A program made the position numbers and the translations under genes. Below the pieces are notes generated by a model. It made no database searches. It saw only the letters and a program-made list of their open reading frames with translations, and had not been told where the DNA came from. Positions 7,719 to 59,523 of a DNA stretch of 64,000 bases are shown here, piece by piece. Each line of letters opens with the position of its first letter. Position 1 is the stretch's first letter. The stretch comes from Scyliorhinus canicula (Eukaryota): contig NC_052160.1 of the NCBI RefSeq assembly GCF_902713615.1, positions 137,744,737-137,808,736 on the forward strand. The letters run 5' to 3'.

Positions 7719-8045
7719 GTACATGGGAGCCAATTGTATCAGAGATCAGTGGTGTTGTGGGAAATGTCGCCACTGTACCATGTCTGTACACGGAGGAGGA
7801 GAAATACTATCAGAAACTCTTGTGTAAAGTCACCTCTAGAAATAAATGCACCATTATTGCCAGCTCTAATGGGGCTGTAACCAATCTGCAAAATGGGAGT
7901 GTTTCAATCACTATTAATAATTCTCATAATTTTACTGTTACCCTGGGCAACATTAATAAAGCCGATGAAGGAGAGTACTGGTGTGGAGCAACAAGAATAA
8001 CAAACATAAAGATCGTCCAGGTAAAAAATCTGACAACTGTTGAAG
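7719..8045 (+). CDS. Gene A exon: Ig V-set domain D2 (CD300/pIgR/MDIR-like)
   Basis: caacag|GT acceptor, GAAG|gtaagg donor, 327 bp phase 1-1; TVPC...LLCK...KC...DEGEYWCG with the extra C-C' cysteine pair. Confidence 0.92.
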
Positions 8046-8879
8046 GTAAGGTTCAATATAAAATTATTATCATTCAATCAGTGTTGAATAAAACTCCCAA
8101 AACAATAACAATTGGTCAATGCTTAGTTCTTTATTTACACATTGCGGCCACCCTACTTCATCTCAACCTTTCAGCCCATCCTTCTCTTACTTTCCCCCTC
8201 GCTAAGTTTAGCTCAATTTCCCCCGAAGAGCATCTATGAAATTTGTCACAATTACACCTTGTGGTACAGGTAGAACGTCTCAGATCCGCTGACCAAAAAA
8301 ACAAGTGTCCATCCACAAACCAGACATTTTTAGGATGCTCAAGGCACCAATTTTAACTGAGTGAAATTTTTTAAAACGCACTGGACAATTCGGCTAGGTG
8401 CCACGTTGGCACGATGTGGCTCCAGACTAGATACTGGCTTCACCATCCACTCTATCCGCCGCTGCATATGATCCTTACACCAGCTGACCCGGCCTCACAT
8501 GAACCACCCGTGGCCTGGACTGCCCACCCTTCACCCCAGCAAGATCTGAAAGCCATGACTGGATTGGAGGTACTGTCCCTAGTTCCACATTTAACAAGTT
8601 CCAGCTTCCATCAGCTCTCTGGGTAAAGTCTTCAAAAATTTCACGAATACTACAAGAAAATATAAATGTTAAAAATAAATTGAGAGTTTGTGCAATACCT
8701 CACAGATTATTGTCCTCCCAACACTATAAACTCTTTGTGAAGGCCCCTCAGAATCTACCTTTTCCTCAGCTTTAAACACCCAGGTTCACTTTCCATAAGT
8801 ATAGTACGTTGAAGATAATAATTGTGGTGGTTGGCAGTTATTCATCAAATTATTCATACATGTTTATTTCTGACAATAG

Positions 8880-8910
8880 GAAGACCAAATGGTTCCAACG
8901 ATACCTCAAG
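8880..8910 (+). CDS. Gene A stalk exon (GRPNGSNDTS)
   Basis: caatag|G...CAAG|gtaaga, 31 bp phase 1-2; identical exon at 26473. Confidence 0.8.
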
Positions 8911-9830
8911 GTAAGATTTTAATTTGCAACTTCTAAATATCAATCTTGTGCCATCCTCATTGAAGCCACGGTTGTTAGATAATCCTGCTTTCCACACAGG
9001 TCATGATGAGCAATGCGATGTTATTAAATTACTATAATCCACGCAACCACCATATTGATGCCATATATTTCCTCATAATTCTGCCATTGATTGTCTTACC
9101 ATTTAATACACACATATCGAAGCCAGGGGGCGACGTTTTTCAGACCTTGGCAGTAATCATTCGGTGCGATAATATGAGAGAGTTACATTAACACTTTCTG
9201 CTGATACCTTCCCTTACGGAACATCCGACACCCCAGCCCAGCGTTTATTCATTCACGGGATGTTGATGCTGCTGAAAAACCCTCATTCATTGCCCATCCC
9301 TAATTGCCCTTGATAAAATGTTGGTAAGCCACCACCTTGAACCCCTGCTGTCCATGTGATGCCAATACACCTGTGTTGTACGGTGGAGAGGGTTTTGACA
9401 CAGAAAAGGTGATGGAATCATGATCCACTTACAGGTCAAGTTAGTGTGGTAGTTAAGAAGGTGAATTTGAGGTGGTGCTGCTTTACCTGTTGGCCTTGTC
9501 TTTCCAACTGGTGATGGTCACAGGTTTGGAAGGTGTTGCTGAAGAAGCCTTAGAACACTGCTGTAATGCATCCTCAACAGAGAGATGCAGTCTCACCAGA
9601 ACACAGCTCGTCCCTGCGCAATTCCTGTTAGAGATATTTTCCCTGTGTGTACAAAGCCCAAAACTCCTAGGTGTGATTACACTTTGAAAATCACCCCATA
9701 GCTCGTACAAACTGTCAATGTGTTCAATATCATTTTCCAGAATTGTTGGGATGTTACTGATGGTCATTTTGCATAAACTGTGGGTTAATTTATTTTGTAC
9801 TGTATTAATTATAATTCCTTGTTTAATCAG

Positions 9831-9937
9831 AGAGGTTCTGCTGAAGATATGGACTATATTCCGTTGGCTGCTCTTTGCGGCTCTGGCTGTTTGCTCCGCT
9901 TCAGTCACATTCTATGAACATTTTGCAAAAGGGCCAG
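9831..9937 (+). CDS. Gene A transmembrane exon
   Basis: taatcag|A...CCAG|gtataa, 107 bp phase 2-1; REVLLKIWTIFRWLLFAALAVCSASVTFYEHFAKGP. Confidence 0.88.
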
Positions 9938-10604
9938 GTATAAAATATGAAATCTTTTTGCTCTAATATTTACAGATATTTAACTTCAGCCTAAAAACTC
10001 AGGCACTTTGAAAGTTGCCAAGAAAAACAACACATAATCCACAAGAAAATAAGTTCTCTTTGTGAAAATGTAACGAGGGAGCCATTCGAGTGTGATAACA
10101 ATGACCTTTGGGCTGAATTTTATGCTCGTCGACGGAAAGGATAAAAATGTCAGTTCGTCAGGAGATTTTCATTTTTACGCGGGAGTGCAAGATGGGAAAA
10201 GTTGTGTAGACACTCAATGCAAAGCACTGTTTAATTAAATTTTTATTCAAAATGCATACCTGTGTCCAATAGTGGCCTTGAACATGGGTAAGGGAGCATC
10301 AACAGTGCCCCTGGAGCAGGCACAGTATGGTGCATTGTATAACCTGGAGCCCATGATGTGCCCCAGAGCTGTGGGCACCAGATGCAAAATAGAGAGCTTC
10401 CCCGAACCCAGGAAATTGGAGCAATATCGCAGTGCGAGGTTATTGCAAACAAACCTCAGCACTTACATCAGGATGTCTCCATCCACACTCTCACCTATTT
10501 TTTCGCCATGTATCGCTTGAAGTATTTCACTTACAGAAAGAAGGTCAATTCCTCTGTTTTCTTCATTACGATTGATTAAATTTATTTGTTATTCAGTTCT
10601 GCAG

Positions 10605-10738
10605 GCCAGCAAATGATGGGTTCTGTGGAAACATCAGCCAGAGAACATCAATGGGGTCAGAGCTGCATTCGAAGACCGGCCAGAAGGTTGACTAATACCT
10701 ACACGAATGTCCAGAATATTTTCACCTTGCTTTTATAA
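10605..10738 (+). CDS. Gene A cytoplasmic tail exon
   Basis: ttctgcag|GC phase 1; GQQMMGSVETSAREHQWGQSCIRRPARRLTNTYTNVQNIFTLLL*; AATAAA about 90 bp downstream. Confidence 0.72.
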
Positions 10739-10830
10739 GTTACTTTACCGTTTTGCAGTATTTTTATTCTTTATGACAATCTGAAAATCTTTGTAAAGTC
10801 TTGAGAAACTATGTGAACTGCTTTCATTAT

Positions 10831-11540: not shown

Positions 11541-13053
11541 ATCATCCTCACATTAATTTTATATTGCAATTATCAGTAAACAGCCTTCCTTCTTTAAGCT
11601 TGGGGGAGTGATTCGGGATGGCACGGTCACACAGTGGTTAGCACTGCTGCCTCACACCTCCAGGGGCCCGGCTTCAATTCCGGCCTCGGGTGGCTGTCTG
11701 TGTGGAGTCTGCATGTCCTCCCCGTGTCTGCGTGGGTTTCCTCCGGGTGCTCCGGTTTCCTCCCACAGTCCAAAGATGTGCAGGTTAGGTGGATTGGCCG
11801 TGCTAAATTGCCCCTTAGTGTCCAAACGGTTAGGTGAGGTTACTGGGTTATGGGGATAGGGTGGAGGCATGGCCTTAAGCGTTTCCAAGAACCGGTGCAG
11901 ACTCAATGGGCCGAATGGCCTCCTTCTGTACTGTAGGGATTCTGTGATTCAACGATCTCGTTGAATCCTGTGAGAGGCCTCTCGTGAGATTTGCGACGCT
12001 TGTAATGCCTCACGAGAACCAACGGAATCTCACAAGACGTCGCGATCTGGATCTTGCTCTCACTGCGCGTGACCCAGATCGGTATATTTAAATGAGCCAT
12101 TCGGTGTTCGCTGGATTCTCCCGGCACTCGGGATGTAACGGCCGCTCCTTGGAGATCTTCGTCAGGATGCCATTTGGAGCTGGTTTCCACAAACGTGGAT
12201 CAGGGATCACAGACTCAGGGTGGGGTGGGGGGCGGGGGGGGTTGCTCCCAGCCGTTAGAGACCCCTGGGTGGTCGGGCACAGGGCAAGGTGATACCGTGG
12301 GACTCCCGATGGCAGCCTGCCACCTTGGCCCTCCCACCCTGGCACCTTAGCCCTGCCACCCTGGCACCTTGGCAATGCCATCTTGCTGCTGTCTGGGTGC
12401 CAGGCTGGCAGTACCATCGTGTCCAGGTAGCAGGTTGACACTGATGGCGATCAGGCCCAGTGGAGCCTTTACAGGTGGAGGAGGGGTGACAGGGTGTTCC
12501 CAATGACCTCCTCAAAGTTGGGGTCAGAGGGGTCAAAAACAGGGTGGGAGGACTGAAAGTGTGCGGGGTGGGGGGGCACAAAGATCGGGTCAGTATTTCA
12601 AAATGCGAGGTGCATTTCCTGCCGGTGAGCAGAAGCAGGAAATCGCTCAAAGTGCGGCCTCAGGGGGGAGTCACTCCCCTCGGCCAAAAGAACAGCAAAG
12701 TGCCGTTCAATATTGGGGTGTTTTTCAGCTCTGCAGCCACCCAGAAACACCCTGCTAAACGCGTGCCAACCAGACATAAACATTGTCTGCTTGAATTGCC
12801 CTGAGGTTTCTCATCAACCCTCTTGGGATGAAGCTCAAATCTAGTTGGATTTGTAGCTTCGGATGAGCTGTGGGGTTAGTGAAGTGCCCAATTTAACTCT
12901 GCAATCCTCGGAAGAATTGGACTTCACAGGCTGTTGGGGGACAGGGCTTACACTCTGCAAATTTATATCACTGCATGTGTGTCCTGATTGTACATGCTTC
13001 ACCTGAACCAATTGACTGTTGTTTCTACAACCCTTTGGTTAGATAGTTCTGTT
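11541..13053 (+). repeat. Left arm of a long inverted duplication (unique DNA + V-SINE + MITE + unique DNA)
   Basis: Reverse complement of 18835-20516; ORFs 12544-12804(+) and 19311-19568(-) translate almost identically. Confidence 0.92.
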
Positions 13054-14442: not shown

Positions 14443-14482
14443 ATGATTATTACTGCAATGCTGTTCCTCACTTTGATATCAA
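14443..14482 (+). CDS. Gene B leader (signal peptide) exon
   Basis: ATG...TCAA|gtaaga, MIITAMLFLTLIS, phase 1; paralog at 36920. Confidence 0.85.
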
Positions 14483-14574
14483 GTAAGATTTTCCAATTCT
14501 ATATTTGGAGTAACAGCTCATGTTTATGTCTGAGAAAAATGGCACGACGTTTCTATTTTTTAAATTCAGTTCGG

Positions 14575-14788
14575 GGATGTGGGTGTCGCTGGTTATGCCA
14601 GCATTTATGGCCCATCCCTAGCTGCCCTTCAGAAAGTGGTGGTGAGCTGCCTTCTTGAACCGCTGCAGTCTGGGTGTAGGTACACCCACTGTGCTGTTCG
14701 GGAGGGAGTTCCAACGACAGTGAAGGAACAGCGATCTATTTCCTAGTCAGGATGGTGAGTGACTTGGAGGGGAACCTCCAGGTGGGGT

Positions 14789-14821
<33 letters not shown>

Positions 14822-15370
14822 CCCAGGTATCTGCTGCTCTTGTCCTTCTGGGTGGTAGTGGTCGTGGATTTGGAAGGTGCGATCTAAGGAACCTTGGTGA
14901 GTTACTGAGGTGCATCTTGTAGATGGTACACACGGCTGCCACTGTTCGCAGTGGTCGAGGGTTTGAATGTTTGTGGAAGGGGGAGCAATCAAGTGGGGCT
15001 GCTTTGTCCTGGATGGTGTTGAGCTTATTGAGTGTTGTTGGAGCTGCGCTCAACCAGACAAGTGGCGAATAAGCCATGGGGACGTCACGGGGTCCAGAGT
15101 CGATGTTGAGGACTCCCAGGGCAACTCCCTCCCGACTGTATACCACTGTACCACCACCTCTGCTGGGTCTGTCCTGCCGAATAGACAGGACATTTCCAGA
15201 AATGGTAATTGTGCAGTCTGTGACATGGGCTATAAGATATGATTCTGTGAGTATGACTATATTAGGCTGTTGTTTAGCTAGGCTGTGAAATAGCTCTCCC
15301 AACATTAGCACAAGCCCCCAGATGTTAGTAAGGAGGAACTTGCAGGGTCGGCAGAGCTGGGTTTGCTGTT
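14575..15370 (-). mobile_element. L2/CR1-group LINE remnant (internally deleted)
   Basis: ORF 14736-15311: KQQPNIVILTESYL and LDTIQDKAA-type motifs; same insertion at 37050-38160. Confidence 0.75.
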
Positions 15371-15423
15371 GTTATTTCCGGAGCCTGGTTCGGTGTCGGG
15401 CAGCTGTCGGGCAGTCCGCCCGT

Positions 15424-16470
15424 TTTTAGCAGTATATATATATATATATATTTAGCAGTATATATATATATATATTTAGCAGTATATATATATATTTAGC
15501 AGTATATATATATATTTAGCAGTATATATATATATATTTAGCAGTATATATATATATATTTAGCAGTATATATATATATTTAGCAGTATATATATATATA
15601 TTTAGCAGTATATATATATATTTAGCAGTATATATATATATATTTAGCAGTATATATATATATTTAGCAGTATATATATATATTTAGCAGTATATATATA
15701 TTTAGCAGTATATATATATTTAGCAGTATATATATATATTTAGCAGTATATATATATTTAGCAGTATCTATATATTTAGCAGTATATATATATATATATA
15801 TATTTAGCAGTATATATATATATTTAGCAGTATATATATATATATTTAGCAGTATATATATATATATTTAGCAGTATATATATATATTTAGCAGTATATA
15901 TATATATATTTAGCAGTATATATATATATTTAGCAGTATATATATATATTTAGCAGTATATATATATTTAGCAGTATATATATATTTAGCAGTATATATA
16001 TATATTTAGCAGTATATATATATTNNNNNNNNNNNNNNNNNNNNNNNNNNNNNNNNNNNNNNNNNNNNNNNNNNNNNNNNNNNNNNNNNNNNNNNNNNNN
16101 NNNNNNNNNNNNNNNNNNNNNNNNNNNNNNNNNNNNNNNNNNNNNNNNNNNNNNNNNNTTTAGCAGTATATATATATATTTAGCAGTATATATATATATT
16201 TAGCAGTATATATATATTTAGCAGTATATATATTTAGCAGTATATATATATTTAGCAGTATATATATATATATTTAGCAGTATATATATATATATTTAGC
16301 AGTATATATATATATTTAGCAGTATATATATATTTAGCAGTATATATATATATATTTAGCAGTATATATATATATATTTAGCAGTATATATATATATATA
16401 TTTAGCAGTATATATATATATATTTAGCAGTATATATATATATTTAGCAGTATATATATATATTTAGCAG
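15424..16470. repeat. Compound tandem array TTTAGCAG(TA)n with an assembly gap at 16025-16158
   Basis: Directly visible; constant 8-mer separated by TA runs of variable length. Confidence 0.97.
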
Positions 16471-17356
16471 CGTGTCGCGTCTTTTCGTCCGACGTCACTT
16501 CGTCCAACGACACTTCGTCCACGTCTTTTGGTCCAACGTCTTTTTGTCCGCCCGTCTTTTGGTCCAACGTCACTTCGTCCAATTATCCAATTACAAATTA
16601 GCTCCGTATAAAACCATTTAATTGATAAAATGCAAGTACAATACAGCAAGTGAATTTAATTGCTAAAATGCAAGTAATTGATAAAATGCAAGTAAAATGT
16701 AAGTTGAAAAATGCAGTTAAAAAGTTAAAAAATCTAAAAATGCAGTTAAAAAATCTAAAAGTTTACTAATTACTTAAAATTCCCGAAATTACTTAAAATT
16801 GATGTAAATTGTAAATTCCCGAAATTCCCTAAAAGTTAGATTTCCAGAACTGTACCCGAGAGAGAATAATGGGGAGAGGACAAGATGATTTGATATTCTA
16901 CAATTCCGACACACAGAGATATAAGTGGGAGTCTAATTGGATTTAGACAATGAGTGCAGTTCTGAAAGAAGCAGATTTAAACTCGATTTTCGTCGAGTGA
17001 TTAAAACCTCTGGTTGGCAGTGGGTTCTGACATTACAGGTCTGAAATGATCAAATATTCCATCAGATACAATGGCTCTCATCACGCTGGAGCATACATGG
17101 GTGAATATCCTGCAGCTTATCTTAATAATGTCTGGAGATCAAGCAGCACAAATGCAGAACTCAACCTCAAGAGGCGAAATAGGTGGAGAGGATCCTTGAG
17201 CAGTAACATTGAAAAACTAAATTAAACTATTTGTAATTGGATAATTGGACGAAGTGACGTTGGACCAAAAGACGGGCGGACAAAAAGACGTTGGACCAAA
17301 AGACGTGGACGAAGTGTCGTTGGACGAAATGACGTCGGACGAAAAGACATAGCACC
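16471..17356. mobile_element. Non-autonomous DNA transposon with long modular TIRs (Mutator/foldback-like)
   Basis: 16479-16598 and 17229-17348 are inverted, 119/120 identical; ATTTAGCAG (9 bp) on both flanks. Confidence 0.8.
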
Positions 17357-17379
17357 ATTTAGCAGTATATATATATATA

Positions 17380-18834
17380 TTTTAAGGGCCTAACGGGTGT
17401 TTAATCTTTTTTTTCCTTTTAAAGCTCTTTGGGAATTCAAATCAGAGGGGATGGAAGCTAGGGCAGTTACCAGCTCCTCCTGTAGGATGTGGATGGTGAT
17501 TACACCAGCCGGATGTGCACCCAACTCCAGCTCCTCGGAGACCGCGTTAGGGAACTGGAGCTAGAGCTGGATGAACTTCGGATCATCCAGGAGGCAGAGG
17601 GGGTGATAGAGAAGAGTAACAGGGAGGTAGCCACACCCAAGGTGCAGGACAAGAGTAGCTGGGTTACACTCAGGGGAAGGAAAAGGAACAGGCAGACAGT
17701 GCAGGGATCCTTCGTGGCCGTTCCCCTTCAAAACAAGTGTACCGTTTTGGATGCTGTTGGGGACCTACCGGGGGAAGGTCCTAGCAGCCAGGTCTCCGGC
17801 ACTGAGCCTGGGTCTGTGGCCCAGAAGGGAAGGGGAAGAATACAAAAGCAATAGTGATAGGAGCCTCAATGGTTAGGGAAACGGGTAGGAGATTTTGTGG
17901 TTGCGAACGAGACTCCCGGAAGGTATGTTGCCTCCCGGGTGCCAGGGTCAGGGATGTCTCGGATTGAGTCTGCAGGATTCTGAAGGGGGAGGGGGAGCAA
18001 CCAGAAGTCGTGGTGCACATAGGCACCAACAACACAGGTAAGAAAAGGGATGAGGATCTAAAAAGGGAGTTAGGTTGGAAGCTAAAGAGCAGGACAAGCA
18101 GAGTACTGATCTCAGGATTGCTACCGGTGCCACGTGCAAGTGAGGCAAGGAAGAGAGAACGAGTGCAGCTGAACACATGGCTACAGGGCTGGTGCAGGAG
18201 GGAAGGCTTCAGATATGTGGATCATTGGGATATCTTCTGGCGAAGGTGGGACCAGTACATGAAGGACGGATTGCACCTAAACTGGAGGGGGCACCAATAT
18301 CCTGGGTGGGAGGTTTGCTCGAGCTCTTCGGGAGGGTTTAAACTAGTTTGGCAGGGGGATGGGAACCAGAGCTATGGATCAGAGGATAGGGTAGCTGTTG
18401 AATGGGCTGAAATAGTATGCAGCAAGTCTGTGAGGAAGGATAGACAGTTGATAGGGCAAAGTTGCACTCAGTGGAATGGGTTAAAGTGTGTCTGTTTCAA
18501 TGTAAGAAGTGTCAGGAATAAGGGAGATGAACTCAGAGCATGGATCAGTACTTGGAACTATGATGTGGCCATTACGGGGACATGGATTTCACAGCGGCAA
18601 GAATAGTTGTTCGATGTTTTGTGGTTTAGATGTTTTAAGAAGAATAGAGAGGGAGGTAAAAGAGGAGGGGGAGTGGCACTGTGAATTAGGGAGTGCACCA
18701 CACTGCAGAAAATGTGGTAGTGGAGGAAGGTTTGTCTTCTGAGTCAGTATGGGTGGAAGTCAGAAACAAGAGAGGAGCAGTCACTTTATTGGGAGTTTTC
18801 TATAGACCCCCCAATAGCAGCAGTGAGATGGAGG
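17380..18834 (+). mobile_element. CR1 LINE 5' portion: ORF1 (SGNH esterase-type) and start of ORF2
   Basis: VHIGTNNTG...DGLHLNWRG and LKCVCFNVRSVRNKGDELRAW; truncated at the junction with the inverted arm. Confidence 0.85.
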
Positions 18835-20516
18835 AACAGAACTATCTGACCAAAGGATTGTAGAAACAGCAGTCAATTGGTTAAGATGAGGCAGCTACAA
18901 TCAGGACACACATGCAGTAACATAAATTTGCAGAGTGTAAGTCCTGTCGCCCAACAGACTGGGAAGTCCAATTCTGTCCAGGATTGCAGAGTTAAACTTC
19001 CTTTTTCATTTTTTTCCAATTAAGGGGCAATTTAGCGAGGCCAATCCACCTAGCCTGCACATCTTTGAGTTGTGGGGGCGAAACCCACGCAAACACGGGG
19101 AGAATGTGTAAACTCCACATGGACAGTGACCCAGAGCCGGGATCAAACCTGGGACCTCGGCGCCCTGAGGCCACAGGGCTAACCCACTGCGCCACCGTGC
19201 TGCCCCTTGATTGCAGAGTTAAAATGGACACTCCACTAACCCCACAGCTCATCCGAAGCTACAAATCCAACTAGATTTGAGCTTCATCCCAAGATGGTTG
19301 ATGAGAAACCTCAGGGCAATTCAAGCAGACAATGTTTATGTCTGGTTGGCACGCGTTTAGCAGGGTGTTTCTGGGTGGCTGCAGTGCTGAAAAACACCCC
19401 AATATTGAACGGCACTTTGCTGTTCTTTTGGCCGAGGGGAGTGACTCCCCCCTGAGGCCGCACTTTGAGCGATTTCCTGCTTCTACTCACCGGCAGGAAA
19501 TGCACCTCGCATTTTGAAAATACTGACTCAATCCTTCTCTCCCCCCCCCCCCCCCCCCCCCTGCACACTTTCCGCCCTCCCCCCCCCCCCTCCTTTTCAC
19601 CCTTCTGACCCCAACCTTGGGGAGGTCATTAGGAACACCCTGTCACCCCTCCTCCACCTGGTAAGGCTCCACTGGGCCTGATCGCCATCAGTGTCAATCT
19701 GCTACCTGGACACACTGGTACTGCCAGCCTGGCAGCCAGGCAGTGGCAAGATGGCACTGCCAAGGTGCCAGGGTGGGAGGGTCACGGTGATAGGCTGGCA
19801 TAGGGAGTTCCCACCACCCCCCCCCCCCCCACCCCCCCGCCCCCACCACCCCACCACCCCGGGTCTGTTTTGCCTGATCCAGCTCTAAATCCTGACGAAG
19901 ATCTCCCAGGAGTGACCGTTACATCCCAAGTGCTGGGAGACTCCGGCGATCGCCTAATGGCTCATTTAAATATACCGATCTGGGTCACGCGCAGCGAGAG
20001 CGAAATCCAGATCGCGACGTCTCGTGAGATTCCGTTGTTTCCAGCGTCGCAAATCTCACGAGGGGCCTCTCGCAGGATTCAACGGCCTTTTTGGGCCCAA
20101 CGAGGCCGTTGAATCACAGAAGCCCTACAGTGCAGAGGGAGGCCATTCGGCCCATTGACTCTGCACCGGTTCTTGGAAACAGCACCCTACTTAAAGCCAC
20201 GCCTCCACCCTATTCCCACAACCCAGTATCTCACCTAACCTTTTGGACACTAAGGGGCAATGTAGCACGGCCAATCCACCTAATCTGTACATTTTTGGAC
20301 TGTGGGAGGGAACCGGGGCACCCGGAGGAAACCCACGCAGACACGGGGAGAATGTGGCAAACTCCACAGAGACAGTCACCCGAGGCCGGAATTGAACCCG
20401 AGCCCCTGGAGATGTGAGGCAGCAGTGCTAACCACTGTGCGGCTGTGCCACCCCGAATCACTCCCCCAACCTTAAAGAAGCTGATAATTGCAATATAATG
20501 TTAATGTGAGGATGAT
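18835..20516 (-). repeat. Right arm of the inverted duplication (in gene B intron 1)
   Basis: Reverse complement of 11541-13053 plus one extra SINE; absent at the homologous point of gene C intron 1 (about 41970). Confidence 0.92.
18997..19208 (-). mobile_element. Short V-SINE inserted after the duplication
   Basis: 15-bp TSD GATTGCAGAGTTAAA (18982-18996 and 19209-19223); empty site in the left arm. Confidence 0.9.
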
Positions 20517-21223
20517 TTTTGAATTTTAAATAAGAGTAATAAATGCAAAGTGAGGAGTTATGTTAACCCTTCACTACTCACTGGTTAGGTACTGTGTTCA
20601 ACTCTGGGCAACACACTTGAGGGAGGAGGTCAAGCCCCTGGCGAGGGCACAGGGCAGATTTACCAGGATGATACCAGGAATGTGGCAGTTTGGATTTGTG
20701 GGCAGATTGGAGAAATTGGGATTATTGTCCTTAGAGTAGAAAAGATTAAAGGGAAAAAAGTATTGAAATTGAGGAAGGGTCTCATGCAGCAGGTGGAGAG
20801 TAATTATTTCCTCTGCTGGTGGATTGGTAACAAGAGATCATAGAGTTAAAATAGTTGGGAGAAAAAACAGTGGGTAAATGAGGAGACGTTATTTCACACA
20901 TTAGGCTGTTATCATCTGGAAAACACCACCTGGAATAATCATGGAATGAGATTCCAGAGGAACTTTCCAAAGGCAGATGGACATACATTTGAAGGGGACC
21001 AATGTGCAGGGTTTCGGAGGGGGGCTGGGGTGTGGGATTAAATTGGACAATAAATGTTCTAAGAGCTGGCACAGACATGACGGGCCGAATGGCCTCCTTC
21101 TCTGCTTTAAGGTTCTTGACACCAGTCCCACTCAGGATTTGTGTGTGTCCCCTTGTGAAAGGATTGTCTAAAATTGATTGATGGGATATTTCCAGCTTTC
21201 TTAAAACATGTTTCACCCAACAG

Positions 21224-21553
21224 CTTCACAGACACAGACGGCTCCGATAGTGATGAGAGCTGCAGTGGGAGAAACCATCACAGTGGGATGTCTACAGGGA
21301 GAAAGGTACAAAGGAAACTCTGCAATCTGGTGGTGCAGGACAACTTCGGGAACTCGGTGCGATCATATATCGAGCATTGATGGGCAGAAAGTCAGAAATG
21401 ATTATCGAGGAACATCAATTGCTAATACAAATGGCAAGATTTCAGTAACCATACGACACCTTCAAGAGATAGAAACAGGAGCATACTGCTGTGGACTAGA
21501 AGATAACGGCTCATTCAATATTTCAGATGTTATATTGCTGAAGGTTTTCACAG
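21224..21553 (+). CDS. Gene B exon: Ig V-set domain D1
   Basis: ccaacag|CT...ACAG|gtaaga, 330 bp phase 1-1; TVGC...IWWC...RC...ETGAYCCG. Confidence 0.9.
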
Positions 21554-21715
21554 GTAAGAATATTGCAGAAGATTGATTCTAGCGTTGATAATGTGGTTGG
21601 GCTGCAGTAACACTGCTGCTGTGTGAGCTCAGACTATGAAAGGATTATCACAGTTCCTTATGTACAAGTAAAGACCTCCCATCCTCCCATTTCTATCCAT
21701 TTCCATTAACCTCTC

Positions 21716-24194: not shown

Positions 24195-24495
24195 ATAATA
24201 ATCTTTATTATTGTCACAAGTAGGCTTATGCTAACACTGCAATGAAGTTACAGTGAAAATTCCCCTAGTCGCCAAATTCCGGCGCCTGGTCGGGTACATG
24301 GAGGGAGAATTCAGAATGTCCAAATTCCCTAACAGCCCCTCTTTCGGGACTTGTGGGAGGAAAGCGGAGCACCCGGAGCACGCAGACACGGGGAGAACGT
24401 GCAGACTCTGCACAGACAGTGACCCAAGCCGGGAATCGAACCTGGGACCCTGGCGTCATGAAGCCACTGTGCTAACCACTGTGCTACCGTGCTGC
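24195..24495 (-). mobile_element. tRNA-derived SINE with (ATT)n tail
   Basis: tRNA-like head and V-type core; fragments of the same family at 22860-22985 and 49090-49270. Confidence 0.75.
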
Positions 24496-26472: not shown

Positions 26473-26503
26473 GAAGACCAAATGGTTCCAACGATACCTC
26501 AAG
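26473..26503 (+). CDS. Gene B stalk exon
   Basis: Identical to 8880-8910 with the same splice sites. Confidence 0.8.
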
Positions 26504-45908: not shown

Positions 45909-45918
45909 AAGGGGACCA

Positions 45919-46094
45919 AATACTCCAATACTCCAAGCAGCACAATACTCCAAGCAGCACAATACTCCAAGCAGCACAATACTCCAAGCAGCACAATACT
46001 CCAAGCAGCACAATACTCCAATACTCCAAGCAGCACAATACTCCAATACTCCAAGCAGCACAATACTCCAATACTCCAAGCAGCACAATAGTCC
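45919..46094. repeat. Tandem array of AATACTCCAAGCAGCAC (17 bp) with 8-bp sub-duplications
   Basis: Directly visible; derived from CR1 sequence next to the MITE. Confidence 0.95.
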
Positions 46095-46304
46095 AGGTGC
46101 AGTCTTACTAATGCTTCCAAAAGGCAGATGGACAAAAATTTGAAGGGGACCAATGTGCAGGGTTTCGGGGGGGGGGGGGGGGGGGGTGGTGTGCTGGGGG
46201 GTGGGATTAAATTGGACAATAAATTTTCCAGGAGCTGGCACAGACATGACGGGCCGAATGGCCTCCTTCTCTGCTTTAAGGTTCTTGATTCCAGTCCCAC
46301 TCAG

Positions 46305-47998
46305 GGGGCGAAATGCTCCGCGGACCGACGTGACGCCCATTTCCCGCGGGAAAAAGCGGTGCGCATGACTCCGGCGTCCGGGCCTTCTTTTCAGCTGGCA
46401 ATCTCCGTTCCCGGAAGGGCCAGCAGCGGACTGACGGGGGGTTCCGGCAATGGGGGGGGGGGGGGGGTTTCCGGCATGGGGGGGGGGGTTCCGGCATTGG
46501 GGGGGGGGTTCCGGCATTGGGGGGGTGTTCCGGCATTGGGGGGGGGTCCGGCACTGGGGGGGGGGGGTTTCGGCATTGTGGGGGGGGGGGGTTCCGGCAT
46601 TGGGGGGGGGGGTTCCGGCATTGGGGGGGGGGGGGTTCCGGCATTGGGGGGGGGGTTCCGGCATGGGGGGGGGGTTGCGGGCAGCGGCGTGCAGAGAGGG
46701 GGGGCGACGGATGCCCGGGGCCAACGCACCGTCGCCCCCCCCCCTCTGTACGCCGCTGCCCCCTACCCCAACACCCCCTCACCACCCCTACCTCCCTCCC
46801 CACCCCTACCTCCCTCCCCACCCCTACCTCCCTCCCCACCACTACCCCCCTCCCCACCACTCCTACCCCCCTCCAACGCCGCCCCCCCATCTCTCGCAAC
46901 GCCGCAACCCCCCCCCCCCTCAACGCCGGGTCCCCCCCCCCCTCAACGCCGGGTCCCCCCCCCCTCAACTGCCTGGTACCCCCCCCCCTCAATGCCGGTA
47001 CCCCCCCCCCTCAGCGCCTGGTACCCCCCCCCTCAACGCCGGTACCCCCCCCCCCAACGCCGGTACCCACACCCCCCCCCCTCTGAAGGCCGGTACCCAC
47101 ACCACCCCCCTCTCTCTCCTCCTCCCCCCCTTCCTTCCTCCCCCCCTTCCTTCCTCCCCCCCCCTTCCTCCTCCCCCCCCCCTTCCTTCCTCCGTTAGTG
47201 GGGGGGGGTGCGGCGTTGGAGGGGGGTAGGGGTGGTGGGGAGGGGGGTAGGGGTGGTGGGGAGGGGGGTAGGGGCGTTGGAGGGAGGTAGGGGTGGTGAG
47301 GGGGGGTGGTTGGGGTAGGGGGCAGCGGCGTACAGAGGGGGGGGCGACGGTGCGTTGGCCCAGGGCATCCGTAGCCCCCCCTCTCTGCACGCCGCTGCCC
47401 CCAAACCCCCCCCCGATGCCGCAACCCACCCCCCGATGCCGCAACCCACCCCCCCCATGCCCCCCCGATGCCGCAACCCACCCCCCGATGCCACAACCCC
47501 CCCATGCCCCCCCGATGCCGCAACCCACCCCCCGATGCCGCAACCCACCCCCCCATGCCCCCCCCGATGCCGCAACCCACCCCCCGATGCCGCAACCCAC
47601 CCCCCCATGCCCCCCCCCGATGCCACAACCCACCCCCGATGCCGCAACCCCCCCCCCGATGCCGCAACCCCCCCCCCCCCGATGCCGCAACCCCCCCCCC
47701 GTACACTGAACGGCGTCAACCATCATCAATGGATGACGCCGTTTTAAAGCAACTGTGATTTTCGCCGACGTGACCCGTGGCCACGTCGGCGGGACTTCGG
47801 CCCATCCGGGCCGGAGATTTGTGGACACTAAAAAAAAAATGAAATCCCGCCGGCGCCAGCTGTTTTCAGAGGCTGCCGGCGGGATTTGCACAACGCCGGT
47901 TTTTGGCCGGTCAGAGATTTAAAAACCCTGCGGGAGCGGGATTAACGCCGCTGCCCGCCGATTCTCCGACCCTGCGTGGGGTCGGAGAATCCCGCCCC
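46305..47998. mobile_element. Foldback MITE copy 2, ending about 90 bp upstream of the gene C D1 exon
   Basis: Same termini and arms as copy 1; empty site CTCAG^GATTTG at about 21135 in gene B. Confidence 0.78.
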
Positions 47999-48090: not shown

Positions 48091-48417
48091 CTTCACAGAC
48101 ACAGACGGCTTCGATAGTGATGAAAGCTGCAGTGGGAGAAACCATCACAGTGGGATGTCCACAGGCAGAAAGGTACAAAAGAAACTATGTTATCTGGTGG
48201 TGCAAGGCAACTTCGGGAACTCGGTGCGATCATATATCGAGCATTGGACAGAAAGTCAGAAACGATTATCGAGGAACATCGATTGCTGATACCAATGGCA
48301 GGATTTCAGTAACCATACGACACCTTGAAGAGAAAGATACAGGAACATACTGGTGTGGGGCACTTGATAATGGTGTAATCCATACTTTAGATGTTATATT
48401 GCTGAAGGTTTTCACAG
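48091..48417 (+). CDS. Gene C exon: Ig V-set domain D1
   Basis: ccaacag|CT...ACAG|gtaaga, 327 bp phase 1-1, canonical DTGTYWCG. Confidence 0.92.
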
Positions 48418-48925: not shown

Positions 48926-50067
48926 GATTAAAGCCACGGTTTACTTCTACTCAGGTCTCGAGTGAATTGATGGTCGCATCACCAGGTTCGATTCCCCGTT
49001 GGGTCACTGTCTGCGTGGAGCCTGCACGTTCTCCCCGTGCCTGCGTGGGTTTCCTCCGGGTGCTCCGGTTTCCTCCCACAGTCCAAAGGTGAAAATGAAA
49101 TGAAAATCGCTTATTGTCACGAGTAGGCTTCAATGAAGTTACTGTGAAAAGCCCCTACTCGCCACATTCCGGTGCCTGTCCGGGGAGACTGGTACGGGAA
49201 TCGAACCGTGCTGCTGGCCTGCTTGGTCTGCTTGGTAAGCCAGCAATTTAGCCCAGAGAGCTAAACCAGCCCCTTGTGCAGGTTAGGTGGATTGGCCATG
49301 CTAAATTGCCCCTTAACGTCGAAAAGATTCGGTGAGGTTACTGGGTTACGGGATGGGGTGGAGGTGTGAGCTTAAGTAGTTTGCTCTTTCCAAGGGCCGG
49401 TGCAGACTCGATGGGCTGAATGGCCTCCTTCTGCACTGTAAATTCTATGATACTATGTAAAGCCCAATACTGTGAATAGAACATTCTAAATCCCATTCAA
49501 TGGTTTTCCTACTGGAAAATCTGGAGTCTTCCATATTTCTGAATATCTATTTCTTCCATTATCCAAAATCCGCGCTAACTTTAGAAGAAGCAGCTTCGAT
49601 ATTAATATCTGTTTTTGAGCTGGTTTTTTACATGTTTCTTCATAACCTACAACTAATACAGTACATCCCCTCGCCCCCCCCCCCCCCCCCCATGCCCCCT
49701 CACCCCCGCTACCCCGGATTGCAGCATTTGTCTTCCCCATTTGCCATCTGGAGTCATTTTCTGCCAACTGTCCCCATAATTCCCCCCCCCCCCCCCCCTC
49801 CCCATAGCCCGCACTCCTGGATTACATCAGGTTTCTGCCTTCATATCCACCCTCCCCTTCTCCTCCTGCCTCCCTCTCCTCCACCCCCCCCCCTTTGACT
49901 CTCCATCCCCCATTATCCACCCACCTTTCCACCCTTTGTCCACACTCATTCCCTCCCTGCCTTCTCTGTTGCTCCATCTCTTCCCACCACCCTCCCAGCC
50001 CTGAGCACGCAGGTCGCAGGGAAGGCCGGAACCAGAAATAACCGAGAAATAGCCAGAAATAGTCCAG

Positions 50068-53712: not shown

Positions 53713-56700
53713 TTGAGTTGCTGGACTCCCTGAATGCAACTACAAACAAGCTGCTTGGAGCTCAGGCGGCCCAGGAGGTGTCTATCCGGGAGTTGCAGCA
53801 GCAGGCCGCTGAGCGGGAGGAGGAGGCCGTGGTCCTCGTGGGGAAAGTGGAGTTGCACGAGGCACTTCACAAAAAGTGGCAAGACCGCTTGGAGGAGCTG
53901 GACGTTCGCACGAGGCGAAAGAATTTGAGGATCCTGGGCCTGGCGGAGGGGCTGGAGGGGTCGGATCTCCCATCGTACGTGACCACGATGTTGAGCTCGT
54001 TGATGGGAGCGGGGTCCTTCCATCTGCCCCTGGAGCTGGAGGGGGCCAACAGAGTGCTGGCCAGGAGGCCTAAGGCAAATGAACCCCCGTGGGCGGTGCT
54101 GGTGCGGTTCCATCGATTTAGCGACCGGGAGTGTGTGCTGCGCTGGGCCAAGAAAGAGAGGAGCAGCAAGTGGGAGAATTCAGTAGTGCGAATCTACCAG
54201 GACTGGAGTGCGGAGGTGGCTAAGCGGCGGGCCGGGTTCAACCGGACGAAGGCGGTGCTGCATGCCAAGCAGGTCAGATTTGGAATGCTGCAGCCTGCGC
54301 GTCTGTGGGTGACATATAAGGACCAGCACCATTACTTCGAGTCCCCAGAGGAGGCGTGGGCCTTTGTACAGGCGGAGAAGTTGGACTCGAACTAGTGTCT
54401 GGGGACACACTATGGCCGTTTCTGTTTTCGCTGTTGCTGTTATTTAATTTTGACATGTGTTATTTTTATGCTGGTTTTCTTTTTGCTCTGTTTCCGGGTG
54501 GGTTTGTCTGTTGGGTATGGGTGTGGGGTATGTGGGGAACATTGGGGGTATGTGCTTTATATGTTCTCTTCTGTACGGGGCTGGGGGTTGGGGTGAAACT
54601 GGATTTTGAGGAGCTGTGTCAGAAGGGTGGGGTGTGGCAGTGTGAAAGCGCGGTCTTTCCTCTGGATGTCTGCGCTGCGGGGCAGGGGGGGGCGGAGCTG
54701 GAGGTGGGGGCATGGCCTTCACTGGTTTTCTTTCCCCCACTGAAGCGGTGCCAAGGAGGTGTGGCAAGAAGGGGATGACCCCATGCCGGGAGGAGATGGG
54801 TTTTGGCGGGAGCTGCCGGGTCAGCAGAAGTCAGCTGACTCACGGAAGTACCATGGAGGGTGTGTCGCGGCTAGGAGGGGTCCTAGCCTGGGGGATGGGG
54901 TGGGGGGGGGGGTGGGGTGGGGGGGGGATACCGGGTTGCTGCTGGAATGGCCAGGATGGAGCTGGTGTGGGCCGGGGGGATAGAGGAGAGGCGTTATCGC
55001 CATGGGGAACGGGTCAGGTGGGGCGAGCTGGCCTGGGGCGAGCAGTCGATAAGCTATGGCTAGCCAGCGGGGGAGAGGGGCAGGTTGCTCTCTGATCCGG
55101 CTGATTACCTGGAACGTGAGGGGGCTGAATGGGCCGGTTAAGAGAACCAGGGTATTTTCTCATCTGAGGGGGCTGAAGGCGGACGTGGCTATGCTCCAGG
55201 AGACCCACTTGAAGGTGGCGGACCCGGTCCGTCTGAGGAAAGGGGTGGGCGGGGCAGGTTTTTCACTCAGGATTGGACGCGAAGAACCGGGGGGGTGGCG
55301 ATTCTGGTGGGGAAGAGGGTGGCGTTCGAGGCGGCTGAGGTGGTGTCGGACAAGGAGGGCAGATATATTATGGTGAAGGGTAGGCTGCAGGGAGAGAAGG
55401 TGGTGCTGGTTAATGTATATGCCCCGAATTGGGATGATGCCGGCTTCATGAGGCGCTTGTTGGGCCGCATTCCGGACCTGGAGGCGGGGGGCCTGATCAT
55501 GGGGGGAGACTTTAACACAGTGCTGGATCCCCCACTGGACCGGTCCAGTTCAAGGACGGGTAGGAGACCGGCGGCGCCAAAGTGCTGAGGGGGTTTATGA
55601 ATCAGATGGGAGGGGTGGATCCCTGGAGGTTTGGGAGGCCGAGAGCGCGGGAGTATTCCTTTTTCTCTCATGTCCATAGGGTCTATTCCTGAATAGATTT
55701 TTTCGTCCTGAGCAGGGGATTGATCCCGAAGGTGCAGGATGCCGAGTATTCGGCCATAGCAATTTCAGACCATGCTCCGCACTGGGTTGATCTGGAGATG
55801 GGGGAGGCGCGGGACCAGCGCCCACTCTGGCACCTGGATGTGGGGATGCTGGCTGATGAGGAGGTGTGTAGGAGGGTCCGGGGAAGTATTGAGGGATATC
55901 TGGATACCAATGATACAGGGGAGGTCCGGGTGGGGATGGTCTGGGAGGCTCTGAAAGCAGTGATCCGGGGGGAGCTGATCTCCATCCGGGCCCATAGGGA
56001 ATGGAGGGAGAGGAAGGAGAGGGAGAGACTGGTGAGGGAGCTCCTGGATGTGGACAGGAGATACGCGGAGGCACCGGAGGAGGGGTTGCTGGGGGAACGG
56101 CGCAGGTTGCAGGCCAATTTTGACTTGTTGACCACCAGAAAGGCGGAGACACAGTGGAGGAGGGCGCAGGGCGCGGTATATGAGTATGGGGAGAAGGCGA
56201 GCAGGATGTTGGCGCATCAGCTCCGCAGGCGAGATGCGGCTAGGGAAATTGGTGGAGTGACGGATAGGGGTGGGAATGTAGTGCAGAAGGGGACAGAAGT
56301 AAATGGGGTCTTTAGGGACTTCTACGAGGAACTGTACTGGTCAGAACCTCCGATGGGGAGAGGGGGGATGGAGAGCTTCATGAACAGGCTACGGTTCCCA
56401 AGGGTTCAAGAGGGGCTGGTAGAGGGGCTGGGGGCGCCGATAGAGCTGGAGGAGCTAGTCAGGGGGATTGGACAAATGCAGTCAGGTAAGGCGCCGGGGC
56501 CGGACGGGTTCCCGGTGGAATTTTATAAAAAGTATGCGGATCTGGTGGGCCCCCTGTTGGGGCGAGCCTTCAATGAGGCATGGGAGGGGGGGCTTTGCCC
56601 CCGACGATGTCACGGGCACTGATTTTTCTGATACTGAAGCGGGGTAAGGACCCCTTGCAGTGTGGATCATACAGGCCTATCTCGCTCCTCAATGTTGACG

Positions 56701-59086
56701 CTAAGTTGCTGGCGAAGGTCCTGGCCACCAGGATAGAGGATTGTGTGCCAGGGGTGATACACGAGGATCAGACAGGATTTGTCAAGGGACGGCAGCTCAA
56801 TACGAATGTGCGGAGACTGCTAAATGTTATTATGAAGCCGGCAGTGGAGGGGGAGGCGGAGATAGTGGTGGCGCTGGATGCGGAGAAAGCGTTTGATAGA
56901 GTTGAGTGGGGGTACCTGTGGGAGGTGCTGGAGTGGTTCGGATTCAGGGAGGGATTCATCAAATGGGTGAGGCTGCTCTACGCGGCTCCGATGGCAAGTG
57001 TAGTTACAAATGGAAGGAGATCGGAGTACTTTAGGCTCTATCGTGGGACCAGGCAGGGGTGCCCCCTGTCCCCCTTGCTCTTTGCACTGGCGATTGAACC
57101 TTTGGCTATGGCGTTGAGGGAGTCAGGGAGATGGAGGGGTCTGGTGCGGGGTGGGGAGGAAAATCGTGTATCGCTGTATGCGGACGACCTGCTGTTGTAT
57201 GTGGCGGATCCAGAAGGGGGAATGCCGGGGGTGATGGAGCTGTTAGCGGAATTTGGGGGCTTCTCGGTCTATAAGTTAAATTTAGGCAAGAGTGAGGTAT
57301 TTGTAGTACACCCGGGTGATCAGGAGATGGGAGTTGGGAGACTCCCATTTAAGAGGGCAGTGAAGAGTTTCAGATACCTGGGGGTGCAGGTGGCCAGGAG
57401 TTGGGGGACTCTCCATAAGCTTAATTTTACCAGGCTGGTGGAGCAGATGGAGGAGGAATTTAGAAGGTGGGACATGGTGCCGCTATCGTTGGCAGGTAGA
57501 GTGCAGTCCGTCAAAATGGCGGTTCTTCCGAGGTTCTTGTTCCTTTTTCAGTGTTTGCCCATCTTTATCCCTAGGGCCTTTTTTAGAAGGGTGACTAGCA
57601 GCATGATGAGCTTTGTTTGGGCGCATGGGACCCCGAGGGTGAAGAGGGTCTTCTTGGAGCGGGGTAGAGATTGGGGGGGCTGGCGTTGCCCAATCTCTCG
57701 GGGTATTATTGGGCGGCCAATATGTCGATGGTGCGCAAGTGGGTAATGGAGGGAGAGGGGGCAGCATGGAAACGGATGGAGAGGGCGTCCTGTGGAGATA
57801 CAAGCCTGGGGGCCCTGGTAAAGGCGCCGTGGCCGCTCCCTCCTACGAGGTATACCACGAGTCCGGTGGTGGCGGCTACCCTCAAGATTTGGGGGCAGTG
57901 GAGGCAACATAGGGGAGAAGTGGGGGGGCTCGATGGAGGCTCCGTTAAGGGGGAACCATAGGTTCGTCCCGGGGAACATTGATGGGGGATTTCAGGGATG
58001 GCACAGAGTGGGCATCAGACAGCTGAGGGACCTGTTTATTGATGGGAGGTTTGCGAGCCTGGGGGAGTTGGAGGAGAAATTTGGGCTCCCCCGGGGAACA
58101 TGTTCAGGTATCTGCAGGTAAAGGCATTTGCTAGGCGGCAGGTGAGGGATTCCCTTCGCTTCCCACGAGGGGGGTGAGCGACAGGGTGCTTTCGGGGGTC
58201 TGGGTCGGAGAGGGGAAGATATCTGATATCTACAAGGTTATGCAGGAGGCGGAGGAGGCGTCAGTAGAGGAGCTGAAAGCTAAGTGGGAGGGGGAACTGG
58301 GGGAACAGATCGAAGACGGGACATGGGCTGATGCTCTGGAGAGGGTTAATTCTTCCTCCTCGTGTGCACTGGGCCCACATATCTGGGACGAGGATGAGTA
58401 GGTTCTTTGGGGGTGTCAGGTGCTCGGGGAGTCCAGCGAACCATGCCTATATGTTCTGGGCATGCCCGGCACTGGAGGAGTTCTGGAAGGGGGTGGCGAG
58501 GACAGTGTCAAGGGTGGTGGGATCCAGGGTCAAGCCAGGATGGGGACTCGCGATTTTTGGGGTTGGGGTGGAGCCGGGAGTGCAGGAGGCGAAAGAGGCC
58601 GGTATGCTGGCCTTTGCGTCCTTAGTAGCCCGGCGAAGGATCTTGCTACAATGGAAGGATGCGAGGCCCCCAAGCGTGGAGACCTGGATCAATGACATGG
58701 CGGGTTTCATTAAGCTAGAAAAGGTCAAATTTGCCCTGAGAGGGTCGGTACAAGGGTTCTTTAGGCGGTGGCAACCTTTTCTCGACTTTCTGGCTCAACG
58801 GTAGGGTACGGGGACAGTAGCAGCAGCAACCCGGGGGGGAGGGGGGGAAGGGGGAGGGAAAGGGGGGGGGGGCGGACAATGACTATGTTTGTTTATTTAA
58901 TTTTAATTTATTTTTAAGTTCTTTTGTTGTTCATTGGGGTTGGGGGGTGGGGGGATGTGACACATGCGTTGATACGGTCTGGGGGTGTTACAGTTATTAT
59001 GGGTTATTTTGTTGCATTTCATTGTTTGTCGTTATGTTTTATATTTTCTGTAAAAAATTCCAATAAAAATTATATTAAAAAAAAAA
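53713..59086 (+). mobile_element. L1-clade LINE, 5'-truncated in ORF1, ORF2 with frameshifts and stops, poly(A) tail
   Basis: ORF1 53718-54395 (RRKNLRILGLAEG); ORF2 WNVRGLN, GGDFN, SDH, PGPDGF, RQGCPLSP, YADD, HMFWAC; AATAAA 59062 and A-tail 59077-59086. Confidence 0.93.
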
Positions 59087-59196
59087 CAGAAAGTAATTTT
59101 GACATTTTTAACATTTGCTTGGTTCATTATGTTTTGAGCAATGAAAAGATGCTGAGTTTTGAACTTTTATTGATTGTGTTTCTCATCTATCAACAG

Positions 59197-59523
59197 GTAC
59201 ATGGGAGCCAATTGTATCAGAGATCAGTGGTGTTGTGGGAAATGTCGCCACTGTACCATGTCTGTACACGGAGGAGGAGAAATCATATCAGAAATTCTTG
59301 TGTAAAGTCACCTCTAGAAATAAATGCACCATTATTGCCAGCTCTAATGGGGCTGTAACCAATCTGCAAAATGGGAGTGTTTCAATCACTATTAACAATT
59401 CTCATAATTTTACTGTTACCCTGGGCAACATTAATAAAGCTGATGAAGGAGAGTACTGGTGTGGAGCAGAAACAGTAAAGAACATAAACATCGTCCAGGT
59501 AAAAAATCTGACAACTGCTGAAG
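59197..59523 (+). CDS. Gene C exon: Ig V-set domain D2
   Basis: caacag|GT...GAAG|gtaagg, 327 bp, open frame, 8 aa differences from gene A D2. Confidence 0.9.

Follow-up and report, generated by a model that had tools for sequence, protein, structure and literature searches.

A segment of a pIgR-like gene cluster in the catshark Scyliorhinus canicula with one complete two-V-domain receptor gene

The Cx7C motif has been described for CD300, PIGR, and NKp44 (bioRxiv 10.1101/2022.04.21.489081). In fishes, the zebrafish PIGRL genes are presented in citing papers as a tandem family that is related to pIgR and specific to its lineage (Kortum et al. 2014, cited in PMC4664633 and bioRxiv 10.1101/2022.04.21.489081), and the skate MDIRs are introduced, likewise in a citing paper, as modular domain immune-type receptors (Cannon et al. 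2006, cited in PMC3031540).

We analyzed a 64,000-nucleotide stretch of the Scyliorhinus canicula genome, here called the window, and read it as a piece of a pIgR-like gene cluster encoding CD300/pIgR-superfamily proteins with type I membrane topology, in which one gene (gene B) is complete and the genes are probably activating members of a paired family; we put the probability of this reading at about 0.88. The catshark genes share with the mammalian CD300/CMRF35-like receptors the V-set domain with the Cx7C motif, and these receptors gave the top single-domain scores among solved structures (CLM-6, CD300A, and CLM-1; 56–65 bits with family profiles). Like the shark family, mammalian CD300 is a tandem cluster of activating members with a charged transmembrane (TM) segment and inhibitory members with an ITIM. 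CD300 has one V domain, however, while gene B has two and some of its relatives three or more, and the sequence identity is only ∼30%. Zebrafish PIGRL may be the closest functional analogue of the shark genes, although it is a separate expansion and the best teleost matches are only 26–28% identical. The MDIRs are said to vary in domain number, which would match the forms of 284, 390, 432, 482, and 792 amino acids (aa) in the shark family; their domains are reportedly I- or C2-like, in contrast to the V-set score of the catshark domains. Family searches seeded with Pristis and Amblyraja homologs returned skate "pIgR-like" proteins, none of them named MDIR.

The coding exons of gene B, the parts of the neighboring units A and C, and the repeat and gap regions are located as follows (window positions).

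7719–8045, plus strand: gene A V domain D2 exon, phase 1-1; 94.8% DNA identity to D2 of gene B, AG/GT ends, D2 profile E = 1.9e-51
8880–8910, plus strand: gene A stalk exon, 31 nt; paralogy to gene B and RefSeq match
9831–9937, plus strand: gene A TM exon (LLKIWTIFRWLLFAALAV...); paralogy to gene B and RefSeq match
10597–10616, plus strand: gene A last coding piece (..VLQASK, stop at 10614–10616); same TTCTGCAGGCCAGCAAATGA as gene B
14443–14482, plus strand: gene B leader exon (MIITAMLFLTLIS); exon-end check and RefSeq match
15439–16470, no strand: 20- to 22-bp AT-rich TATATATATATATTTAGCAG minisatellite in gene B intron 1, enclosing an assembly gap
21224–21553, plus strand: gene B V domain D1 exon, Cx7C at residues 51–59 (CRTTSGTRC); Pfam V-set (PF07686) E = 1.9e-10, PDB matches pIgR and CLM-6
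25153–25479, plus strand: gene B V domain D2 exon, Cx7C at residues 159–167 (CKVTSINKC); Pfam V-set (PF07686) E = 2.6e-11, PDB matches pIgR (3e-30) and CLM-6 (7e-12)
26473–26503, plus strand: gene B stalk exon; exon-end check and RefSeq match
27428–27534, plus strand: gene B TM exon, whose predicted helix contains Lys248 and Arg254; RefSeq match and AlphaFold model
28404–28423, plus strand: gene B last coding piece (VLQASK, stop TGA at 28421–28423); 284/284 identity to XP_038675793.1
28424–28590, plus strand: remainder of the previously proposed tail exon, most likely 3′ UTR; would be coding only if a soluble isoform skips the TM exon, as modeled for a paralog
36920–36959, plus strand: gene C leader exon (MVFTALLFLTLIS); the RefSeq gene with a 792-aa product starts exactly here
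40791–41550, no strand: four assembly gaps in gene C intron 1, separated by short islands of read sequence; sequence inspection
48091–48417, plus strand: gene C V domain D1 exon, lacking one codon relative to gene B; profile E = 8e-45
59197–59523, plus strand: gene C V domain D2 exon; paralogy to gene B and family profile

The initial annotation had joined six exons into gene B, and its GT/AG ends, matching phases, and open frame of 1,014 nt were all reproduced: AG precedes and GT follows all six exons (with ATG at the start and a stop at the end), the phases are compatible, and the join contains no internal stops. Five of the six exons were exactly right, since only the sixth differs from the RefSeq model XP_038675793.1; its acceptor had been placed at 28412, 8 nt away from 28404. 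A second AG at 28402–28403 lies 8 nt upstream of that of the 28412 acceptor, and splicing there gives a 284-aa product ending in ...FAKGPVLQASK. Gene B spliced at 28404 is identical at 284 of 284 residues to XP_038675793.1 (S. canicula, "polymeric immunoglobulin receptor-like"). The record of this protein in assembly GCA_902713615.2 gives its gene a length of 13,981 bp, equal to 14443–28423 of the window. Which of two AGs 8 nt apart is used determines whether the ending has 6 or 59 residues, and the reading based only on the sequence chose the wrong one. We consider 28404 the most likely last acceptor, based on RefSeq models, themselves predictions, and on cross-species conservation. The tail could also have come from read-through of the TM-exon donor; this yields the ending ...GPGIKYEIYLL and was rejected because the exact RefSeq match requires the 28404 acceptor.

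The domains had been described as V-set domains with an extra C–C′ cysteine pair, of the CD300/pIgR/NKp44/TREM group, and on this point Pfam, the Cx7C motif, the profile ranking, and the predicted fold agree. Across 19 chondrichthyan members, the Cx7C cysteines vary little or not at all, and both gene B domains probably form an extra C–C′ disulfide besides the B–F pair; in D1 of gene B, an unusual Cys-Cys takes the place of the Trp-Cys seen in relatives. For the family placement, solved structures were ranked with single sequences and family profiles; the nearest solved relatives were, in order, pIgR, teleost two-domain pIgR (5f1s), CD300/CLM, FcmuR, NKp44, and TREM2. An AlphaFold model of the gene B product (pLDDT 78, the domains mostly 80–94) consists of two Ig sandwiches and a TM helix, and its top Foldseek matches were human and teleost pIgR. 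In sequence, profile, and predicted fold alike, D1 and D2 are closest to pIgR and CD300/CMRF35, and for this reason the family assignment holds. The gene B product is predicted to comprise a leader, two V-set domains, a short, putatively N-glycosylated stalk, a TM helix, and a tail of ∼13–15 residues ending in VLQASK.

The suggestion that this domain pairing may be unannotated fails because the identical gene B product and a family-wide annotation stand in RefSeq: at least 15 chondrichthyan species, among them sharks, rays, and chimaeras, have two-V homologs named "CMRF35-like molecule" or "polymeric immunoglobulin receptor-like". Gene B and its family are already known by annotation, and little about them is new. 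A literature search on pIgR-like or CD300 genes of sharks, catsharks included, yielded nothing specific, and the shark pIgR-like family appears unstudied in the searchable literature. Its value for comparative immunology lies in the two-V, Cx7C architecture and the TM arginine being kept from chimaeras to sharks; with charged-TM and ITIM forms paired in one family, it is a reasonable starting point for asking about the ancestral ligand and signaling mode of CD300/pIgR.

The predicted TM helix of the gene B product contains K248 and R254. Members from Mustelus, Hypanus, and Callorhinchus share the TM arginine, R254 being kept from chimaera to catshark, and the ending ...Q(A/V)SK is common to all seven retrieved 284-aa catshark models and Mustelus. 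The short tail of gene B (...CYAHFAKGPVLQASK) contains no ITIM or ITAM. Two ITIM-like motifs (xIxYSTV and SVEYSxL) are found in relatives from S. torazame, Carcharodon, Cetorhinus, Pristiophorus, and Pristis, as well as from Hypanus, Amblyraja, Mobula, and Hemiscyllium; the retrieved family includes four charged-TM and nine ITIM forms. ITIM-tailed members were found neither in the window nor among the S. canicula matches retrieved. The conserved TM arginine (plus the lysine) and the short tail, together with the ITIM-tailed relatives elsewhere, suggest paired receptors of which the window copies are the activating side.

Under the most likely model, the window genes would be the activating members of a family of paired activating and inhibitory receptors. 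They would signal through an ITAM adaptor (DAP12 or FcR-gamma type) recruited by the basic TM residue, with the opposing signal coming from the ITIM-tailed relatives. CD300 and zebrafish PIGRL suggest by analogy that the two V domains would more likely bind a lipid, or a surface pattern of pathogen or self, than polymeric Ig. The cluster expanded by recent tandem duplication, and A (D2 to stop) and C (leader, D1, and D2) represent parts of neighboring units.

The genes could instead be cartilaginous-fish orthologs of pIgR proper, carrying polymeric IgM across epithelia. They bear the RefSeq name pIgR-like, their two-V architecture with tandem Cx7C domains resembles teleost two-domain pIgR in particular (PDB 5f1s), and pIgR provides the best overall sequence and fold matches, including the best solved ones, with D2 aligning best to human D5. 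In contrast to pIgR proper, a single-copy gene whose product has an uncharged TM segment and a long tail carrying sorting, endocytosis, and transcytosis signals, the catshark genes form a multicopy tandem family (at least 10 consecutive RefSeq accessions), have basic TM residues, and end in a very short tail, too short for sorting or transcytosis signals. CDR1 of D1 appears to lack a recognizable mammalian pIg-binding sequence, phmmer pairing "PTSVNRHTRKYWC" of human D1 with "QGERYKGNSAIWWC"; as single domains, the CD300 V domains outscore the isolated pIgR D1 constructs (56–65 versus 40–46 bits), and the ITIM-tailed paralogs fit a paired leukocyte receptor better. Judged by their sequences, the catshark genes look like signaling and not transcytosis receptors, and we give orthology to pIgR proper hardly any credence. 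Very improbable, too, is that gene B uses the 28412 acceptor after the TM exon and that the resulting 337-aa product with its 59-residue cytoplasmic tail is real. The AG at 28410–28411 is canonical, the frame is open for 59 codons, and the same frame of the last exon occurs in S. torazame RefSeq models and in a TM-skipped S. canicula isoform; yet the upstream acceptor (the equivalent of 28404) explains every retrieved RefSeq model, and 28412 is needed by none. Between the A and B copies, 28424–28590 is 92% identical, no better than the introns, and in the 28412 frame the stops differ, that of gene A coming 16 codons before that of gene B. The long tail contains no ITIM, ITAM, or sorting motif and its hydrophobic end looks noncoding, while the short QASK/QVSK ending is conserved between Scyliorhinus and Mustelus. 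At the sequence level, the C-terminal 59 residues of the 337-aa protein are unsupported; they most likely represent 3′ UTR or the frame of a TM-skipped soluble isoform, and the frame matches the model XP_038675787.1 once the TM exon is skipped.

A similar weighing applies to the units flanking gene B. The paralogous exons reported for A and C in the initial annotation do recur there, but neither unit is a complete two-V gene within the window. A six-frame hmmsearch of the whole window with the family D1 and D2 profiles found exactly five V-set exons (D1 of B and C; D2 of A, B, and C), with no diverged D1 for gene A and no further V exons for gene C. The D2-to-stop part of gene A exactly matches the last 160 aa of XP_038675790.1 and forms the 3′ cassette of a 49,290-bp RefSeq gene; by coordinate arithmetic, this gene ends at the gene A stop, and its three isoforms (X1–X3) differ only in the D2/TM cassettes. 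Gene C opens a RefSeq gene that extends past the right window end and has a multi-V product of 792 residues, as known from coordinates and product length. Gene A, and possibly gene C, may be nonfunctional partial duplicates, the RefSeq links to distant exons being read-mapping artifacts among near-identical paralogs. The 7.7 kb upstream of D2 in gene A contain no D1 or leader, and RefSeq ties its cassette to a leader and D1 ∼38.7 kb beyond the left window edge; no stalk, TM, or tail exon was found in the 4.5 kb after D2 of gene C, which is modeled as a 792-aa product. Against this, every exon of A and C has an open frame, the cysteines are conserved and the splice sites canonical, and dN/dS of D2 is below one; we regard loss of function as possible but doubtful. 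Less probable still, and in our view unlikely, is that the cross-unit RefSeq models are real, one leader–D1 being spliced to alternative D2–stalk–TM cassettes tens of kilobases downstream and gene C running into later units to give the 792-residue multi-V receptor, a modular combinatorial repertoire from one locus. If true, tandem duplication and cassette choice would create combinatorial receptors, the original MDIR idea.

Returning to the tandem cluster, we found its units to be 87–95% identical at the DNA level, introns included, which fits recent duplication and bears out the earlier view of an expanding innate-receptor cluster. At least three units lie in the window, and at least 10 consecutive RefSeq proteins (XP_038675784 to XP_038675793) map to one chromosome. 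The dN/dS ratio was 0.4–0.65 for D2 and ∼0.95 for D1, the latter from a single pair. Positive selection on D1 was considered and not retained, as this value indicates fast evolution and does not demonstrate diversifying selection.

Every assembly gap is intronic as judged from the window, and none is crossed by an exon or reading frame; the gap in gene B intron 1 (16025–16158) lies inside the minisatellite, with the repeat on both sides (15439–16023 and 16159–16470). Transcription of the D1 exon is indicated indirectly, with 31–77% of its sampled words found in RNA contig runs compared with 7–31% for a 3.8-kb stretch that is ∼20% exon.

The receptor cluster in the window is real and its family had been rightly recognised, but it is already annotated. 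The initial annotation had suggested that the pairing of two V-set domains (D1 and D2) might be unannotated; the product of gene B, the central of the three CD300/pIgR-like receptor units A, B and C, is in fact XP_038675793.1, and two-V relatives are annotated across cartilaginous fishes. When D2 was searched exhaustively with HMMER, two-V proteins named "polymeric immunoglobulin receptor-like" or "CMRF35-like molecule" in their sources turned up in many cartilaginous fishes, among them Mustelus, Scyliorhinus torazame, S. canicula, Carcharodon, Cetorhinus, Heterodontus, Pristiophorus, Hemiscyllium, Pristis, Hypanus, Hemitrygon, Mobula, Narcine, Amblyraja, Leucoraja and Callorhinchus.

The exons of gene B, including a transmembrane (TM) exon, are as follows.

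14443-14482, leader exon
21224-21553, D1 exon
25153-25479, D2 exon
26473-26503, stalk exon
27428-27534, TM exon
from 28404 (initially from 28412), last exon

All six exons initially proposed were present as described: each is preceded by AG and followed by GT (the first begins at ATG and the last closes with a stop codon), the phases are compatible, and the 1014 nt joined encode 337 residues with no internal stop. The claim that the gene could be assembled in full held for the exons and the open frame and failed at one splice site. The acceptor first chosen is preceded, 8 nt upstream, by a second AG at 28402-28403. Splicing the TM exon to 28404 gives G/TT CTG CAG GCC AGC AAA TGA and an ending ...FAKGPVLQASK, the C terminus of the 284-aa S. 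canicula RefSeq models, and the product so assembled is identical to XP_038675793.1 at 284/284 residues. In the record of that protein in assembly GCA_902713615.2, the gene covers 13,981 bp, equal to window positions 14443-28423. The frame used initially (GQQM...) is that of the last exon once the TM exon is skipped; a paralogue isoform, XP_038675787.1, is modelled as TM-skipped, likewise from the upstream acceptor. The 59-residue tail given by the downstream acceptor is poorly supported, because in that frame the stop of gene A comes 16 codons before that of gene B, the 92% identity between A and B is not above that of the introns (~95%), a signalling motif is absent, and the short ending ...Q(A/V)SK-stop is instead common to catshark and Mustelus.

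The assignment to the CD300/pIgR family proved correct. Both V exons of gene B passed the Pfam V-set model. Among all solved structures, pIgR ranked top for both D1 and D2, with a score that sums over its five domains, followed by a teleost two-domain pIgR and then single-domain CD300/CMRF35-like molecules. Searches with D1 and D2 profiles made from 15 chondrichthyan homologues gave one and the same ranking: pIgR, teleost pIgR 5f1s, CLM/CD300 (56-65 bits), FcmuR and NKp44 (~46-48 bits), isolated pIgR D1 (40-46 bits) and TREM2. Besides the canonical B-F cysteines, both domains carry a Cx7C pair (residues 51-59 and 159-167), the motif described for CD300, PIGR and NKp44 (bioRxiv 10.1101/2022.04.21.489081). 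The AlphaFold model of the gene B product (mean pLDDT 78) consists of two Ig sandwiches and a long TM helix, and Foldseek ranked human and teleost pIgR top. D1 of gene B differs from most family members at residues 102-103, reading Cys-Cys (AYCCG) in place of Trp-Cys (YWCG) and so having an extra, possibly unpaired cysteine beside the canonical F-strand Cys; several catshark paralogues and S. torazame models share the change.

The catshark genes are unlikely to be the shark's true pIgR, since the family is multi-copy, the TM is charged, the tail is very short and alignment with pIgR shows the D1 CDR1 binding sequence to be missing. Lys248 and Arg254 fall within the predicted TM helix of the gene B product, and the TM Arg, in a W-x-I-x-R-W context, is kept in Mustelus, Hypanus and the chimaera Callorhinchus. 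Other family members combine an uncharged TM with a long tail bearing two ITIM-like motifs (I/V-x-Y-S-T-V and S-V-E-Y-S-x-L). A set of charged-TM and ITIM-tailed forms is classically the mark of leukocyte receptors that come in activating and inhibitory pairs, which suggests that the genes in the window are the activating members of a paired family, whose signal would pass through an ITAM adaptor. Family products of 284, 390, 432, 482 and 792 residues reflect variable domain numbers, which would fit the picture of the skate modular domain immune-type receptors (MDIR). The pIgR-related genes of zebrafish are analogous to the shark family; phospholipid binding, reported for them in a passage of PMC4664633 citing Kortum et al. 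2014, is a zebrafish result.

Paralogous exons had been claimed for genes A and C, and tblastn and blastn of the gene B exons against the window recovered them, all with canonical splice sites and open frames.

7719-8045, D2 exon of gene A
8880-8910, stalk exon of gene A
9831-9937, TM exon of gene A
near 10597, last exon of gene A
36920-36959, leader exon of gene C
48091-48417, D1 exon of gene C
59197-59523, D2 exon of gene C

A six-frame search with the D1 and D2 profiles found exactly five V exons in the window, so that, together with the exon searches, gene A is without leader or D1 and gene C without stalk, TM or tail within these limits. The description as a tandem family of two-V-domain receptors therefore stands for gene B and not for genes A and C, whose RefSeq models extend outside the window. 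From D2 to the stop, the translation of gene A is identical to the C-terminal 160 residues of XP_038675790.1 (isoform X3). Isoforms X1-X3 of this 49-kb gene have a common leader and D1 and differ in their D2, stalk and TM cassettes, X3 taking those of gene A; the differences could reflect a choice among cassettes of tandem units, or they could be an artefact of modelling. This gene is 49,290 bp long, and between its end and the start of the next gene lie 3,827 bp, precisely the separation of 10616 and 14443; its own start is thereby placed ~38.7 kb left of the window. A RefSeq gene starts at the ATG of gene C (36920); its 792-residue product has several V-set matches and extends past the window. 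It is possible that A and C are genes in their own right or duplicates of only part of a unit; they may also belong to longer or alternative transcripts.

The units of the cluster are 87-95% identical, introns included, and are young duplicates. Judged by dN/dS (~0.95 for D1 vs 0.39-0.65 for D2), D1 evolves faster than D2.

Indirect evidence points to transcription: RNA contig runs contained 31-77% of the sampled words of the D1 exon but 7-31% of those of a 3.8-kb genomic stretch with an exon share of ~20%. Run X7, at 0.77 for the exon and 0.15 for the stretch, matches what exon-only contigs should produce.

Intron 1 of gene B holds one assembly gap (16025-16158), inside a 20-22-bp AT-rich minisatellite flanking it on both sides, and intron 1 of gene C holds four (40791-41550). 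All exons and reading frames of the window are clear of gaps; the continuity of the sequence across the gaps is beyond proof from the window alone.

Several mobile elements and repeats accompany the cluster. In the B-C spacer, two adjoining ORFs at 31830-34356 (+) encode reverse transcriptase, RNase H and integrase domains and belong to an LTR retroelement of Ty3/gypsy type. The D1-D2 intron of gene C holds a 388-aa ORF (56580-57743, +) with a strong RVT_1 match (3e-39); from within its 3' end begins a ~1.3-kb repeat (57555-58871) with copies of ~80% identity at 1-1298 and 62252-63612 (inverted), and the two probably represent a non-LTR retroelement family. Intron 1 of gene B contains an ORF of 198 aa (18010-18603, +) that matches GDSL-like lipase/esterase (1.7e-9) and is probably a LINE remnant, because ORF1 proteins of CR1/L2-type LINEs carry an esterase domain of this sort. 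On either side of the gene B leader exon lies a ~1.3-kb inverted duplication of 82% identity (11541-12906 and 19209-20516). A ~340-bp SINE-like interspersed repeat (80-94% identity) occurs in both orientations in the introns and spacers of the cluster.

2602-2947, SINE-like repeat
11615-11950, SINE-like repeat
20111-20454, SINE-like repeat
35755-36096, SINE-like repeat
49275-49455, SINE-like repeat
59887-60226, SINE-like repeat

Just upstream of the D1 exon, gene C intron 1 contains ~3.5 kb of 69% G+C (44270-47700), composed of G-run and C-run minisatellites with 18-22-bp units in direct and inverted blocks. Just upstream of the gene C promoter region, 35062-35637 is a 21/30-bp CTG/GTG-rich tandem array of ~27 copies with 73% matches.
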